Sequence record: PV261925.1
DNA length: 64,000 bases
Reading direction: 5' to 3' (one strand)
This document shows positions 13,296 through 63,868 of this stretch, one piece after another (position 1 is the stretch's first letter; each line of letters starts with the position of its first letter). Under the pieces are notes generated by a model that saw only the letters and a program-made list of their open reading frames with translations, was not told the origin of the DNA and did no database searches. A program made the translations under genes and the position numbers.

Positions 13296-13412
13296 TCAGA
13301 GCAGCGCTTTGCGTTTGCGATTGATCTGAGAGGGCAGTACAGTAACTGTTACTTTCTTGCCATTAGCTTTGAGTTCATCAATGGACTTCAGCAGTTGTTG
13401 ATAGTTGGTCAT
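13296..13412 (-). CDS. Small hypothetical protein (38 aa)
   Basis: MTNYQQLLKSIDELKANGKKVTVTVLPSQINRKRKALL; first gene after repeat copy 1. Confidence 0.6.
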   Translation of the reverse strand: MTNYQQLLKSIDELKANGKKVTVTVLPSQINRKRKALL

Positions 13413-13515
13413 GATGATTGCCGTGGTTACACTATAGCGGACCTTTGGAGGTGAGTAATTTTGAAGTCCTCAGAGTGTTACAGATAAGTGATACTGATTT
13501 GACACGATTGGGGGG

Positions 13516-14215: not shown

Positions 14216-14270
14216 GTGATTGTGTGTCTTATACTATAGTGGACGTTTGAAGGTGAGTAACTTTGTAGAG

Positions 14271-15135: not shown

Positions 15136-15274
15136 AGTAGAAAAAGAAATAAAGGTGGTGATTAAGTGTGGTTCAGAGAAACAAGTCAGAGAAGCAATCT
15201 AGAAGAGAGAAGTCTGAGCGAGAAGTCTGAACCCTTACACCTATGTGGACATTTCGAGGTGAGTAATTCTGTGG

Positions 15275-16143: not shown

Positions 16144-16178
16144 ACTATAGTGGACCTTTCGAGGTGAGTAATTCTGTG

Positions 16179-16379: not shown

Positions 16380-16575
16380 TTATCATATCCTCCCACACTT
16401 CTTCGCCCATCATATCACTAATCTCCTCTTGCAAGTCAGTTTCATCATAATCTTTCATATTTGTTTCTATTTGTTCTGCTGCCCACTGACATAGAGTCTT
16501 GAGATCCATACCATCAACGATTAGCCAGGCATAGTCATTCTTTAGGTTATCAAGTTGTTCAGGTGTGAGTGTCAT
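16366..16575 (-). CDS. Hypothetical protein
   Basis: Likely start MTLTPEQL at 16575. Confidence 0.7.
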   Translation of the reverse strand: MTLTPEQLDNLKNDYAWLIVDGMDLKTLCQWAAEQIETNMKDYDETDLQEEISDMMGEEVWEDMINAVR

Positions 16576-16605
16576 TGGATCAGTGTAATATGCGACAAAA
16601 GACAT

Positions 16606-16627
16606 AAAAAAAGAGGGTAAAACCCTC
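16606..16627 (-). terminator. Rho-independent terminator
   Basis: GAGGGT-TTT-ACCCTC followed by T7. Confidence 0.75.
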
Positions 16628-16970
16628 AAGCAAAAACATAACCAGAATGGAAATCTTCAACGTTGTAGACTTTACCAGTTACTGAAGATTCGCCAATGAA
16701 CTTGCGAACATACCAGAGAAAGTCTTTCTGGAAAACACCTTCACCAGCGATACAATACTCTTCGCAAAGTGCATTGAGTCGTGATTTAGTGGTGTTAGAT
16801 TGCCAACCACCGTCAAAGATAGTCAGGCTAGTGTCATCAACCAGAGCAATTTTATTGCCGTGGAGATAAACAGTGGAAACACCCATGTTGGTGACAACTT
16901 CAGTGTTTCCAGATTTCCAGTTTTTGTTGCCGTTGATGGCTTCAATCATCTGGGATTCAATCTTACGCAT
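16626..16970 (-). CDS. Hypothetical protein
   Basis: MRKIESQMIEAINGNKNWKSGNTEV...LHGNKIA...TTKSRLNAL; first gene after repeat copy 5. Confidence 0.8.
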   Translation of the reverse strand: MRKIESQMIEAINGNKNWKSGNTEVVTNMGVSTVYLHGNKIALVDDTSLTIFDGGWQSNTTKSRLNALCEEYCIAGEGVFQKDFLWYVRKFIGESSVTGKVYNVEDFHSGYVFA

Positions 16971-17019
16971 GTGGTTTAGTGGTTCTTACACTATAGTGGA
17001 CATTTGGAGGTGAGTAATT

Positions 17020-17487
17020 CTAGTCTCTGGTAATTAACCACCAAAGTATACCACCAACGACAATTAAGGGAATGGTAATATACCAATATGCAATGGCAAC
17101 AAATACTATACCAAGTGCAAGTAGACCTCCTATGTCACCCATTGACATACTACTTCCACCAGAGTTAGTGTTATTGTAATTGACCTGATGTGTCCCACTA
17201 GATGTAATTGGAGTGGGTGTAGATGATGCCTTGATTCTTTCCTCCTGGTCTCTAAATCGTTGGTTTTGTTCTTCTATCTTTCTCTTGCGTTCTTCTTCTC
17301 TTCTATTATGTTCTTCACGTCTTCCAATATCATAATTATCGACCAATATCGCTGATTTAACATTGGCGCCAGGATAACGTGACCGTGCAACATCAAGTGC
17401 AGCATTGCCACTATTCACACCATCAATCAAAATATCTTGGTTGCGGTAGTTACGATCGCCGTAAATGTGAATTTTGTAAGTAGGCAT
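17020..17487 (-). CDS. Hypothetical membrane protein (coiled coil plus C-terminal TM segments)
   Basis: ORF track; TAG directly abuts repeat copy 5. Confidence 0.75.
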   Translation of the reverse strand: MPTYKIHIYGDRNYRNQDILIDGVNSGNAALDVARSRYPGANVKSAILVDNYDIGRREEHNRREEERKRKIEEQNQRFRDQEERIKASSTPTPITSSGTHQVNYNNTNSGGSSMSMGDIGGLLALGIVFVAIAYWYITIPLIVVGGILWWLITRD

Positions 17488-17515
17488 GAGATTGAAGAAT
17501 AAAATACTTTAACAA

Positions 17516-17626
17516 GTGGCCTTACATTGTATCAAGGTAACCACACCAAAACATGATACAAATGCCACACATTATGGGCCTTACATGAGTGTTGTAACCA
17601 CCACAGAAATTACACTCAATGCCCAT
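17516..17626 (-). ncRNA. Tandem pair of structured hairpins (GUAAG internal-loop scaffold), candidate ncRNA
   Basis: Unit B 17574-17626: ATGGGC-AT-TGAGTGT-19nt-ACACTCA-TGTAAG-GCCCAT. Unit A 17516-17568: GTGGC-AT-TTGTATCA-19nt-TGATACAA-TGTAAG-GCCAC. Stem sequences differ but pairing is kept. Confidence 0.65.
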
Positions 17627-17629
17627 CAA

Positions 17630-17812
17630 TCAAAAAGGATTAGTCCATTTGTGGTGTTGTTGTTTCGTAATCCTACCATCATCAAGTAAACTATCAACCA
17701 CATTTAGGAAGACAGCCCACTTCATGTCACGAGTGAAAGTAATACCTTCCTCTTTGCAATGAGTGTTCACAGTATTACGAACAACGCGTTGAACTTCAGT
17801 TTTTGTCATCAT
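17630..17812 (-). CDS. Hypothetical protein
   Basis: ORF track; LLDDGRITKQQH motif. Confidence 0.7.
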   Translation of the reverse strand: MMTKTEVQRVVRNTVNTHCKEEGITFTRDMKWAVFLNVVDSLLDDGRITKQQHHKWTNPF

Positions 17813-17866
17813 TTTTGTCCTTGTTTGGTTTAGTTGGTTTCGTCCAATAATCGCGGTAAATTGACA

Positions 17867-18019
17867 TCAATTAGTGGGAAAGTTACGACAGACGGCATCA
17901 CAAAGCATACGAATTACATCATCTTTATACTCAACTTCACCAAAGTTAGATTCAATAATACAATCAATGTCCTCCATGAGTTGTTCACGAGCGGTCAACA
18001 TTTCGAGTTGGTCCATCAT
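17867..18019 (-). CDS. Small acidic hypothetical protein (50 aa)
   Basis: MMDQLEMLTAREQLMEDIDCIIESNFGEVEYKDDVIRMLCDAVCRNFPTN. Confidence 0.65.
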   Translation of the reverse strand: MMDQLEMLTAREQLMEDIDCIIESNFGEVEYKDDVIRMLCDAVCRNFPTN

Positions 18020-18174
18020 TTAGAAAGAAGAAAACGACGTGCTTCGTAGGCTTGAAATTGTGAATTGAATGTGGCAATCTTGGTCATATCTTCACGCCAA
18101 TATAATGCCCATTTGTGTGACCCTATCACACCTTTAGCGATGATAGGGTTATCAATACCAAGTGGATAAGTCAT
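18016..18174 (-). CDS. Small hypothetical protein (52 aa)
   Basis: MTYPLGIDNPIIAKGVIGSHKWALYWRED...; ATGA overlaps on both sides. Confidence 0.65.
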   Translation of the reverse strand: MTYPLGIDNPIIAKGVIGSHKWALYWREDMTKIATFNSQFQAYEARRFLLSK

Positions 18175-18332
18175 TCTTCAATAACAGATTGGATTACAAA
18201 TTGTGGTTGATTTCGATTACAAGTTGCAATTGCTTCCTCTTTACTAGAAGCAATGTAACCTAGACAATCTCTCATTGTCCAACCATTAGCACGATGATGT
18301 TCACCGTAGATCAGAAACTTAGATTCTTTCAT
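18171..18332 (-). CDS. Hypothetical protein
   Basis: Likely start MKESKF at 18332. Confidence 0.65.
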   Translation of the reverse strand: MKESKFLIYGEHHRANGWTMRDCLGYIASSKEEAIATCNRNQPQFVIQSVIEE

Positions 18333-18336
18333 GTTA

Positions 18337-18564
18337 TCAACCTCCGTAGACTTCTTCAGCCATAGGTGTATCACTCATGCGATCGAGGTGATCCCAAAGT
18401 GTGTTTTTTTCACCAAACATTTCTTGGAAGAGATCAAGATCTTGACGATCATATTGATCTTTAACAATCCAAATCTCTTGTTCAATCCATGCAAGTTCTG
18501 CACGAGCTTTATCTAGTTTCTTACGAAGTTCGTAAAGCTTTTGGTTTCTTTCTGTGAGTGTCAT
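18337..18564 (-). CDS. Hypothetical coiled-coil protein
   Basis: ORF track; first gene after repeat copy 6. Confidence 0.7.
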   Translation of the reverse strand: MTLTERNQKLYELRKKLDKARAELAWIEQEIWIVKDQYDRQDLDLFQEMFGEKNTLWDHLDRMSDTPMAEEVYGG

Positions 18565-18614
18565 AATGATTCAGTGGTTACACTATAGTGGACATTTCGA
18601 GGTGAGTAATTCTG

Positions 18615-19205
18615 TCAGCCCAACAATACCTGAGGAAAGTATGGAGTCAGGTCAGAATCTACAATCTTATGTTCACAACTCACAAATTTCTTTCGTGATA
18701 CATTCTTGACATAGATCAGGTGGTTAATGTCAATATCTTTGTAATCTTGTGGTCCACGTTTACGAATAAGACCAAAGGCTTCGTTCTCTTCGCGAGTGGA
18801 AACAACGACCTTTGAAAGTTTATCAATGTCTGTCAAAAAATGAGTGATAAGATCATAAGAACGATCTTCCACAAACTTATCATAGTGATATGCAAATATG
18901 AACTTTGAACCACTACGAACACCGCCGAAGTGTTCTTTAGTCAAACTGTGTCCACCTTTGACCTTCATATCAATCACACTGGACAAAGTTTTGTCAGGAT
19001 ATTCACTCCACTTAATAAAAGCTTGAGGAGTGAGGAGAGCACCAGTGTCATCAATTTTATGAGAACCTGCCCAACAAATACCACCAGAAAGATCTTCTAC
19101 AACCTTGAACATGGTCTCACGGGTGTAGATATTGACCTGCTCATCTGTCAGAGACATGATGAGTTTGAGTTGATTAGTTAGGTATCTTTTAGTGGTGGCA
19201 GTCAT
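18615..19205 (-). CDS. Hypothetical protein (196 aa), single-gene cassette between repeat copies 7 and 6
   Basis: ORF track. Confidence 0.8.
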   Translation of the reverse strand: MTATTKRYLTNQLKLIMSLTDEQVNIYTRETMFKVVEDLSGGICWAGSHKIDDTGALLTPQAFIKWSEYPDKTLSSVIDMKVKGGHSLTKEHFGGVRSGSKFIFAYHYDKFVEDRSYDLITHFLTDIDKLSKVVVSTREENEAFGLIRKRGPQDYKDIDINHLIYVKNVSRKKFVSCEHKIVDSDLTPYFPQVLLG

Positions 19206-19250
19206 CGGTTTAATGTGGTTACTTAAGTGGACATTTAGAGGTGAGTAATT

Positions 19251-19536: not shown

Positions 19537-19865
19537 TATCGTAAGTAAAGATAACCACCTGCCCAATCAGCACGTTCATAACATTGTTCGCGTGATTCAA
19601 TCCTCAGAAGATTGTAACGAACACCTTTGGCTGGTGCTTTGAATGATGCAGGTTTGTAAACATCACCAGTCTTCTTATCAACAAAGGCATGAACACTGCG
19701 GGAGTTACCATCAGTCTCCATGATCAGTTTGTGATACTTACGACCAGATTCAATGTAAAACTTGTAACCATCAGACTTGTAATTGTTACGGCGAAGGAAA
19801 TCTTCCATCAACACACCGCAAAGAATGTTAGCGTGTTTCTCAACAATTTGTGTGGGAGTGATCAT
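19536..19865 (-). CDS. Hypothetical protein
   Basis: GRKYHKLI...SVHAFVDKKTGDVYKPASFKAPAKGVRYNL motif. Confidence 0.8.
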   Translation of the reverse strand: MITPTQIVEKHANILCGVLMEDFLRRNNYKSDGYKFYIESGRKYHKLIMETDGNSRSVHAFVDKKTGDVYKPASFKAPAKGVRYNLLRIESREQCYERADWAGGYLYLR

Positions 19866-19882
19866 AGCTTTGTGTGGTTACA

Positions 19883-20026
19883 CTATTGTGGACCTTTGGA
19901 GGTGAGTAATTCTGAAGACCGACGATTGATGGCGGCTACTTCTACACTACTACAAGGAATCAGAACCTTTTGATTTACCCACACAATCTTGCGAGTGTCA
20001 ATATCTGATGCGATGTTGTAAGTCAT
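19883..20026 (-). CDS. Small ORF (47 aa) reading through repeat copy 8
   Basis: MTYNIASDIDTRKIVWVNQKVLIPCSSVEVAAINRRSSELLTSKGPQ; ATGA overlap with the upstream gene. Confidence 0.5.
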   Translation of the reverse strand: MTYNIASDIDTRKIVWVNQKVLIPCSSVEVAAINRRSSELLTSKGPQ

Positions 20027-22207: not shown

Positions 22208-22257
22208 AGAAGTGTGGTCTCTACACTATAGGGGACATTTGGAGGTGAGTAATTCTG

Positions 22258-25113: not shown

Positions 25114-25164
25114 AATATGGTGTGGTCTCGTACTATAGATGACCTTTCAAGGTGAGTAATTCTG

Positions 25165-25617
25165 TCAGATCACATGTATGCTCTCTATATGTGACACTGG
25201 TGAAGATTTACAGTAGAACTGTATATTTTTGTTGTATTTGGTTCTTCTTACAATTCTCTTCAATGCGTTGTAGTCGGTGTCATTATCTCTGGCCCATTTA
25301 GATAATTGATGACATTCAACCACATCACCGTTTCTAAACCTAATTCTATATGTCTTTGCATTAGGGTTGTTATTCAACCCTTGTTCTACAAACTGTTTCT
25401 TATCTGTAAAAACATTGATACGTCCTAACACCCAACCGTCAGGTATTTCGTCTTCAAATACCATCTTATGTTCAAGTCCGTTATTTACCCATACAGACCC
25501 ACGAACATACGACACACGGGCGTCATACACAGGTGTTAGTTCTTCTTCAGTCAGTGTAATTACTGACGGTCCATCACATTCAAACGCGCGATTAAGACCT
25601 TCACAGTTCCAGTCCAT
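25165..25617 (-). CDS. Homing-endonuclease-derived DNA-binding protein, no evident catalytic domain
   Basis: WVNNG..HK..IPDGWVLGR and NPNAKTYRI..LSKWARDN resemble endonuclease C-terminal DNA-binding modules; no GIY-YIG or HNH motif seen. Confidence 0.6.
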   Translation of the reverse strand: MDWNCEGLNRAFECDGPSVITLTEEELTPVYDARVSYVRGSVWVNNGLEHKMVFEDEIPDGWVLGRINVFTDKKQFVEQGLNNNPNAKTYRIRFRNGDVVECHQLSKWARDNDTDYNALKRIVRRTKYNKNIQFYCKSSPVSHIESIHVI

Positions 25618-25625
25618 TCTTCTAT

Positions 25626-25705
25626 TGACAGGGGTAATTATATTTATACCATAAAATGGGTCTTACGTCAACCTAACACCCCTGCCATGTTGACCGCCCA
25701 ATATT
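25626..25705 (-). promoter_or_regulatory. Structured leader (GUAAG scaffold hairpin E2 + late promoter TATAAATA)
   Basis: TGGG-CG-GTCAAC-16nt-GTTGAC-GTAAGA-CCCA; loop TGGCAGGGGT pairs with ACCCCTGTCA (25626-25635); TATAAATA at 25641-25648. Confidence 0.75.
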
Positions 25706-63720: not shown

Positions 63721-63777
63721 GTATGTTTCGTATTAGGTAGTATTCTAACAACGAATAATAAAACACTCAATTCATAA

Positions 63778-63862
63778 TAGGAACGGGGAGACTTGAACTC
63801 CCACGGACATAATGCCCAACTGATTTTAAGTCAGGTGCGTCTACCGATTCCGCCACGCTCCC
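63778..63862 (-). tRNA. trnL: tRNA-Leu, anticodon UAA
   Basis: GGGAGCG/CGTTCCT acceptor stem, TGGCGGAATCGGTAGACG D-arm, CTTAAAA anticodon loop, long variable arm, GTTCAAGTC T-loop; CCA not encoded. Confidence 0.95.
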
Positions 63863-63868
63863 AAAAAA

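Follow-up and report, generated by a model that had tools for sequence, protein, structure and literature searches.

The two hairpins that lie side by side at positions 17516-17626 (Table 1) are real members of a conserved and previously uncatalogued family of RNA hairpins in marine cyanophages. The window, that is, the whole stretch of 64,000 nucleotides analysed, is the final 64 kb of the genome of Synechococcus phage RB11-B (PV261925.1, 210,127 bp), a T4-like cyanomyovirus whose isolation host is Synechococcus sp. MW02; positions 16500-18500 of the window correspond to 162627-164627 of the record with 100% identity. The same scaffold is found in three settings, before early genes (type A, to which the two hairpins belong), with a late promoter (type B) and between tRNA genes (type C). 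On balance we think it probable, with some reserve, that the scaffold presents its loop as an antisense to the 5' leader of a nearby downstream gene and silences that gene on read-through transcripts.

The hairpin pair fills the intergenic gap between two minus-strand ORFs in a hyperplastic, early-type region of small genes, and the genes around it are small, hypothetical and without exception on the minus strand. Unit 2, which begins 3 nt past the stop codon of the upstream gene, is the first transcribed, and unit 1 is the second and has the promoter-proximal position in relatives. The description of both hairpins in the earlier note is borne out base for base on the plus strand; the offsets that it gave, 59 nt at the anchor CTTACA and 57 nt at the anchor AT, are right, and both units have the internal loop CTTACA / AT and a 19-nt apical loop, with GTAACCAC in each apical loop on the plus strand. 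The octamer GTGGTTAC/GTAACCAC, common to both loops, has 13 occurrences in the window, where 2.4 would be expected. The phrog_336 gene that lies upstream of the pair also precedes family hairpins in contigs L008, L056, L130 and L151.

Table 1. Features of the hairpin family and of its surroundings (window coordinates unless stated; apical loops of gene-sense RNAs in parentheses).
Feature	Position	Strand	Description
Upstream gene, 60 aa	17630..17812	-	Stop codon 17630-32; phrog_336, function unknown (PHROG match, E 2.6e-18)
Scaffold hairpin unit 2	17574..17626	-	Gene-sense RNA AUGGGC AU UGAGUGU (AAUUUCUGUGGUGGUUACA) ACACUCA UGUAAG GCCCAU
Unit 2, 5' half	17574-79; 17580-85; 17586-92; 17593-611	+	ATGGGC; CTTACA; TGAGTGT; 19-nt loop TGTAACCACCACAGAAATT
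Unit 2, 3' half	17612-18; 17619-20; 17621-26	+	ACACTCA; AT; GCCCAT
Spacer between units	17569..17573	-	5 nt, ACATT on the plus strand
Scaffold hairpin unit 1	17516..17568	-	Gene-sense RNA GUGGC AU UUGUAUCA (UGUUUUGGUGUGGUUACCU) UGAUACAA UGUAAG GCCAC
Unit 1, 5' half	17516-20; 17521-26; 17527-34; 17535-53	+	GTGGC; CTTACA; TTGTATCA; 19-nt loop AGGTAACCACACCAAAACA
Unit 1, 3' half	17554-61; 17562-63; 17564-68	+	TGATACAA; AT; GCCAC
Replaced cassette	17020..17511	-	155-aa ORFan (17020-17487, start 17487) and short leader, no promoter-like repeat
Early-promoter-like repeats	13431-13458, 14233-14260, 15240-15266, 16144-16171, 16990-17017	-	Sequence repeat
Early-promoter-like repeats	18582-18609, 19221-19248, about 19883-19910, 22225-22252, 25132-25159	-	Sequence repeat
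Early repeat and leader GUGUAACCACACAAAGCUAUG	19865..19910	-	Best predicted partner of unit 1 in the window, -19.6 kcal/mol, top 0.1%
Early repeat TTACTCACCTCCAAAGGTCCGCTATAGT, then leader GUGUAACCACGGCAAUCAUCAUG	13400..13458	-	Predicted partner of both loops
Early repeat and leader GUAACCACAUUAAACCGAUG	19205..19248	-	Predicted duplex with unit 1, -18.2 kcal/mol, top 0.3%
Type B scaffold hairpin	25656..25703	-	Gene-sense RNA GGGC G GUCAAC (AUGGCAGGGGUGUUAG) GUUGAC GUAAG ACCC
Late-promoter consensus TATAAATA	25641..25648	-	Between type B hairpin and complementary leader
Leader UUACCCCUGUCAA	25625..25637	-	Complements type B loop; 8 nt upstream of the AUG at 25617
150-aa gene behind type B cassette	25165..25617	-	Weak HNH-endonuclease similarity (phrog_10820, E 8.6e-7)
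Type C copies	L190:1836-1888 (isolate Bellamy, NC_047838.1 about 155488-155538)		Also in about 30 IMG/VR contigs (L153-L185)

Single-sequence folding recovers both hairpins on each strand, with energy z-scores of -1.7 for the minus and -2.9 for the plus strand. These values are modest, so folding energy alone is weak evidence, and it is the homologues that indicate that the hairpins are more than chance. In a scan of the window against Rfam 15 the tRNA-Leu alone attains the gathering score and the hairpin pair has no match; a permissive local Rfam scan at the pair gave unrelated eukaryotic snoRNA models as its best matches (E 0.8-5), and a tRNA/tmRNA search found none there. A blastn search with the 153-nt region returned near-identical phages only; a match in S-RIM4 sits inside a CDS and was rejected as chance. 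Pattern scans of IMG/VR, which imposed no stem complementarity, found the family in about 100 uncultivated cyanophage contigs, and it is present in isolates as well.

The constant parts of the scaffold, in gene sense, are an outer stem GGGC/GCCC and an asymmetric internal loop AU / UGUAAG. In the inner stem of 6-9 bp the pairing alone is conserved and the sequence covaries freely, and the apical loop has 12-20 nt. Both units are present unchanged in RN05-S and S-B05, and in IMG/VR contigs this internal loop and the loop motif recur on stems of other sequence that pair perfectly. The loop of unit 2, for example, is found as an identical stretch of 19 nt on three inner stems (TGAGTGT, GAGTGT and TTGTAATAC), and the L125 group has the loop of unit 1 on another inner stem. 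Where relatives have two units, these are 4-6 nt apart. Among 30 distinct sequences, 96.7% of the pair cells are standard pairs, compared with 71% in shuffles and 37-50% when the partners are slid; double-sided changes are found in 10 of the 13 pairs, and none of 500 shuffles matched the observed covariation score. The internal loop and the apical loops are far more conserved than the stems. A lack of conserved structure in homologues was one part of what the earlier note said would refute its reading, and in this set the structure is conserved with covarying stems. With a covariance model made from 13 members of the family, unit 1 scores 76.1 bits (E about 1e-19) and unit 2 scores 62.4 bits (E about 1e-15), and in the rest of the window the model finds one further, weaker site of 17 bits, at about 25656-25703. 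These are also the three copies found by a scaffold scan of the whole RB11-B genome (210 kb). On the host side, there is no true scaffold hairpin among the 120 matches listed from a loose-pattern scan of genome contigs. A scan for composites of hairpin and promoter with free loops returned already known members and chance matches only.

Other identities for the pair were considered. A protein repeat had already been denied in the earlier note, and the homologues agree: their indels are not multiples of 3, their loops are of 16, 17, 19 and 20 nt on stems of 6-9 bp, and the stems covary. The idea of a structured, RNA-type element in which a constant scaffold bears an informational, guide-like loop has likewise held. 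The more specific reading as a repeat-spacer-like precursor is not supported. Here the split internal loop and the outer stem are what is constant and the inner stems vary freely, the loops lack the diversity of spacers (they are conserved across phages, one of them on three stems), and none of the relatives found has more than two units. A CRISPR-like array of near-identical direct repeats and variable spacers is likewise not supported. Because the hairpins form the upstream half of a cassette in relatives, a cis-regulatory or class-wide antisense role is indicated instead of a processed array. The hairpins do not fit a Rho-independent terminator: they have a 19-nt loop and a gene-sense tail UUGUUAAAG, and a terminator scan did not call them. 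REP/MITE-like palindromes are rejected since RB11-B has only three copies and the stems covary rather than stay conserved. TACAAT-like boxes of a sigma-70 promoter within the hairpin are unconserved among members, and inspection of the internal loop gave no match to an NtcA site, a K-turn or a loop-E. Folding of the plus strand had been suggested by a recurrent GGGT...GCCC variant, which gives a U.G pair on that strand. The suggestion was withdrawn, as GGGA...GCCC variants occur too, the phage Bellamy carries the GGGT...GCCC variant within a tRNA operon, with U.G on the sense strand as well, and the search patterns had fixed the 3' side.

Without exception among the relatives, the flanking genes are on one strand and the CTTACA side is on the other. 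Read in the direction of the genes, these loci have a stop codon, then a single hairpin or a pair, some 12 nt, a conserved 40-nt repeat, about 10-20 nt more and an ATG; the repeat reads TTACTCACCTC-N10-TATAGT-GTAACCAC. In S-B05 the identical hairpin pair is directly followed by such an early-promoter-like repeat. In the window this repeat, as (AGAA)TTACTCACCTC-N10-TATAGT-GTAA..ACCAC of about 40 nt, lies directly 5' of at least 10 small genes; it often abuts the preceding stop codon, and most of these repeats are without a stem-loop. From its position, its TATAGT box and the analogy to T4-type phages, the repeat presumably serves as early promoter in this phage group. Its -35 region, however, is a poor sigma-70 match, and a promoter scan did not call it. 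A 10-bp palindrome, CACTATAGTG, spans the -10-like box of the repeat. Also within the repeat, UCACCUCC matches the anti-Shine-Dalgarno end of 16S rRNA.

The relation between loop and leader is clearest in type B. The late promoter of cyanomyoviruses is NATAAATA (PMC2984593). A scan for type B gave 18 distinct contexts, the window copy and 17 further ones, and in all of them the loop is complementary to a leader between the late box and the ATG, with a TATAAATA/CTAAATA box at the same position between loop and leader. In the window copy the loop and leader are predicted to form 11 pairs, including two G.U pairs, with an energy of -19.7 kcal/mol that was equalled by 1 of 296 random windows; for the antisense strand the predicted value is -14.4. 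The predicted duplexes of type B range from -16 to -27 kcal/mol, and 15 contexts were unequalled by about 290 random 100-nt windows of their own contig. Loop and leader also change together, with compensatory pairs that reflect independent changes (GTGTCTTGGCG/CGCCAAGACAC, GAGTCTTGGCG/CGCCAAGACTC, TGTCTTGCCGG/CCGGCAAGACA, TTGTGGGGG/CCCCCACAA and TGCGGGGG/CCCCCGCA) and further co-changing pairs (TGCAGGGG/CCCCTGCA and GTGTAGGGGT/ACCCCTACAC). Owing to G.U pairs, in 11 of 16 cases the duplex is more stable on the gene-sense strand. The genes behind type B cassettes are of homing endonuclease types, having HNH, HNH_3 or NUMOD matches or seg-like N-termini. The complete type B cassette at 25618-25703 in the window probably serves a free-standing homing endonuclease that is expressed late and is kept from being translated on read-through RNA, and the type B cassette seems to travel with endonuclease genes. 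The regions L313:9876 and L321:10543 have two type B cassettes per contig, with their own loop/leader pairs, each before a seg-like endonuclease gene.

In the silencing mechanism that we favour, the element would be read as RNA on the gene-sense (minus) strand, and the apical loop would be an antisense copy of the 5' leader, that is, of the promoter-proximal sequence up to the AUG, of a gene behind its own promoter. On a read-through transcript initiated upstream, the loop would pair with the leader and block, or at least mark, the translation start. Transcripts from the intervening promoter would carry no hairpin and would be translated. Since type A loops match a shared early leader (GUGUAACCAC...), early genes would be insulated from read-through translation, and these loops could also act in trans on other early leaders. 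The hairpin structure, its conservation, orientation and context, the covariation of loop and leader in type B and the recombination junctions are established by the sequences, whereas we infer the transcription pattern, the translational silencing and any action in trans. For the pairing of loop to leader on read-through transcripts the support is good in type B and moderate in type A. Points against the mechanism are that transcription may start inside the complementary segment, that type C lacks a leader partner and that early leaders do not come out on top in a genome-wide duplex search of RB11-B.

The closest known kinds of element are the promoter-early stem-loop (PeSL) cassettes, discussed below, and the leader sequestration of T4-type phages. 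In the latter the RBS is sequestered on upstream-promoter transcripts only, and a late promoter inside the structure gives a translatable RNA; the examples are I-TevI, I-TevII, I-TevIII, segB and Aeh1 mobE, and T4 soc and e are listed too (PMC2988022). Type B shares with this system a segment complementary to the translation start that would be present only on upstream-promoter transcripts, a late promoter between the two segments, and regulated genes that are largely homing endonucleases. The inhibitory segment in T4 is, however, the 5' arm of one simple hairpin, whereas in the cyanophages it is the apical loop of a separate conserved scaffold and the pairing is loop-to-linear, or pseudoknot-like. 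The cyanophage targets also lie at the 5' end of the leader and not on the Shine-Dalgarno sequence, and type A is attached to early instead of late promoters. Antisense RNAs that are presented in a loop, such as CopA/CopT, RNA I/RNA II and Sok/hok, are separately transcribed from the opposite strand and act in trans or as cis-antisense RNAs. In these, too, a single-stranded antisense segment in a hairpin loop nucleates pairing with the target leader, but in the cyanophages the antisense loop is on the same strand and transcript as its target.

Type A loops read ...GUGGUGGUUACA in gene sense and so are complementary to the segment UGUAACCAC... found after the TATAGT box in early repeats, and the loops of units 1 and 2 match the consensus early leader. 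In most type A contexts of relatives, not all, the adjacent leader is complementary to the loop, and adjacent leaders pair better than other promoter-like sites in the same contigs (median -13.4 vs -8.0 kcal/mol, Mann-Whitney p = 1.7e-4). The entire loop of 18-19 nt mirrors the leader up to the AUG in L133, L012, L109 and L056, which would explain why the loop has a length of about 19 nt. Several neighbouring leaders match poorly, at about -2 kcal/mol in L017 and L038 and at -9 to -10 in S-B05; the best matches of type A loops are consensus leaders elsewhere in the same contig, and the loops are more conserved than the neighbouring leaders. Pairwise covariation in type A is therefore much weaker than in type B, and the type A loops track the leader of the class and not one neighbour.

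This better fit to the class-consensus leader than to the neighbouring one would also be expected of trans-acting small antisense RNAs, cut from the early transcript, whose loops pair with the shared early leader or with host RNAs and so switch off or stabilise a whole class. In the window, 4 of 10 early leaders are within the top 0.5% of predicted partners of unit 1 and a fifth is within the top 3%, relative to a null of 3000 random 30-mers, and the leader at 13400-13458 is predicted to pair with unit 1 at -17.0 kcal/mol (top 0.5%) and with unit 2 at -18.4 kcal/mol (top 0.1%). Action in trans would be consistent, too, with the persistence of the hairpins in RB11-B without a cis partner and with type C, which tRNA processing would excise as a piece of about 50 nt. 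Against this, the surroundings of type A give no evidence of processing sites, the whole genome has only three scaffold hairpins, and a genome-wide duplex search of RB11-B for trans partners was unspecific, the early leaders not being top-ranked. Transcription may, moreover, start inside the complementary segment, in which case early mRNAs would keep only part of the motif. A search of IMG/VR for the exact cognate leader of the unit 2 loop gave one unrelated match. We consider trans-acting RNAs of this kind rather unlikely.

The hairpins are also the places where the genomes of close relatives part. By their blastn breakpoints, RB11-B and S-B05/RN05-S cease to be homologous at 17512, which is 4 nt off the base of unit 1, and are homologous again at about 17030; RB11-B therefore has a different, promoter-less gene there, a 155-aa ORFan with no Pfam or PHROG match. 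At the same position S-B05 has an early-promoter-like repeat and a different gene of 205 aa. In RB11-B the repeat is absent at 17488-17515, there is no complementary leader downstream of the hairpin pair in the window, and no cis partner of the loops was found within 100 nt of the pair. Because the promoter and leader are absent, the cis mechanism cannot run in RB11-B as it would in relatives. The promoter/leader half has been replaced by recombination, and the two units are thus the orphaned stem-loop half of a PeSL-like cassette, which may act in trans or be a relic.

At the opposite end, L012 and L020 diverge 9 nt beyond the hairpins, and identical hairpins have different neighbours upstream or downstream in different phages. 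With breaks within 4-9 nt of their ends, the hairpins mark recombination junctions, as PeSLs do. Both breaks and the exchange of flanking genes would follow if the hairpins worked as DNA only, either as linkers for gene shuffling by PeSL-mediated exchange or as targets of a DNA-binding protein or nuclease, and Mosig et al. (1998) tied GGGC/GCCC inverted repeats to the endpoints of T4 deletions (reported in PMC2839356). We think a DNA role without any RNA role very unlikely, given that the orientation to transcription is invariant in all contexts, conserved loops go with covarying stems, the G.U pairs of the loop/leader duplexes favour gene-sense RNA, and the type C hairpin directly abuts the 3' end of a tRNA. 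A DNA-level role in recombination may well coexist with an RNA role.

PeSL cassettes have been described in the T4-type phages RB49/phi1, T4/PST and KVP40/nt-1 (Arbiol et al. 2010, PMC2839356; Comeau et al. 2014, PMC4122927); we found no mention of cyanophages in these two papers. As in the family described here, PeSLs are intergenic composites with a stem-loop directly upstream of an early promoter, among the small ORFan genes of hyperplastic regions, with G/C-rich basal stems (GGGC...GCCC), and coincide with insertion or replacement junctions between close relatives. In the cyanophages the adjacency to an early-promoter-like repeat is found in relatives, including S-B05, but in the RB11-B window the repeat is missing downstream of the hairpins. 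The stem-loops of PeSLs, as described, are simple Gn-loop-Cn terminators, whereas the cyanophage hairpins have two tiers and a conserved asymmetric internal loop. Their loop of 12-20 nt is conserved or matched to a leader, no U-tract follows them, and the scaffold is present at only three genomic sites and is also used with late promoters and between tRNAs.

The likeness raises the question of a plain PeSL-type stem-loop, which would act as a terminator or attenuator or stabilise the 3' end of the upstream early mRNA, the sequence of its loop being incidental, for example an inverted duplication of the promoter region. Placed after a stop codon and before an early-promoter-like repeat, the hairpins have precisely the layout of a PeSL; their outer stem is rich in G+C, and stem-loops of this kind in RB49 have been shown to terminate transcription (PMC2839356). 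The cyanophage stem has no trailing U-run, however, and was not called in the terminator scan; a loop of 12-20 nt and an asymmetric internal loop beside a basal stem of 4-5 bp would make a poor intrinsic terminator. A terminator would likewise be out of place between two tRNA genes of one co-transcribed cluster, where the same scaffold is found. The apical and internal loops are far more conserved than the stems, and the covariation of the type B loop with its leader would be needless for a terminator. We therefore regard termination or 3'-end stabilisation with an incidental loop as unlikely.

T4-like cyanophages are among the most abundant viruses of the ocean, and the timing of their gene expression is little understood. 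They are without the T4 genes alt, modA, modB, motA and asiA (PMC2984593). With a conserved, modular RNA device one could explain how genes in dense polycistronic regions are insulated from read-through, how homing endonucleases are kept silent until late in infection and how newly shuffled gene cassettes carry their own regulation. If it is true to the silencing mechanism proposed here, the family could be a compact, sequence-programmable translational insulator. It is directly testable, because it is easily recognised, is not in Rfam and has textbook covariation, in the hairpin itself as well as between loop and target.

In type C, found in Bellamy-like cyanophages, the scaffold has the loop ACCACCACCACCUC; it fits exactly between tRNA-Arg(UCU) and tRNA-Gly(UCC) and abuts the 3' end of tRNA-Arg; in some contigs the loop has one extra ACC. 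This position in a tRNA cluster indicates that the element is read in gene sense and argues against a terminator role. With one tRNA gene on either side, the scaffold would be set free as a fragment of about 50 nt when the tRNAs are processed. Small RNAs derived from the spacers of tRNA operons include 3'ETS-leuZ of E. coli and the stable RNAs of the T4 tRNA cluster. Type C shares with them a structured RNA between tRNA genes that is releasable by tRNA end-processing, but there is no similarity in sequence or structure. No cis leader partner of type C loops was found nearby. In Bellamy the loop complements (GGU)n runs, which are very frequent in glycine-rich structural genes (30-56 kb). The loop and the adjoining stem together read CACCUCCU, which resembles the 3' end of 16S.

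Type C also lets one imagine a wider, programmable antisense platform, in which the handle GGGC / AU...UGUAAG / GCCC, perhaps bound by a protein or nuclease of phage or host, carries exchangeable guide loops, and RNAs of about 50 nt act in trans on classes of mRNA and time the infection. Type A would be aimed at early leaders, type C at structural mRNAs rich in (GGU)n or at Shine-Dalgarno-like sequences. We find a platform of this breadth improbable.

Some further observations were made around tRNA genes. S-SM2 has the same tRNA pair with 4 nt between its members and without the hairpin. In RB11-B, at 64010-64224 of the record (L187:14010-14224) and so outside the window, a simple hairpin, GGAGAU UGAUC AUCUCC, lies directly 3' of tRNA-Arg. 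An unannotated spacer of about 210 nt separates this hairpin from tRNA-Thr, and there might be another small RNA there. A lone tRNA-Leu(UAA), at 63777-63863 of the window on the minus strand, is close to the end of the record and far from the main tRNA cluster at 62056-64297 of the record.
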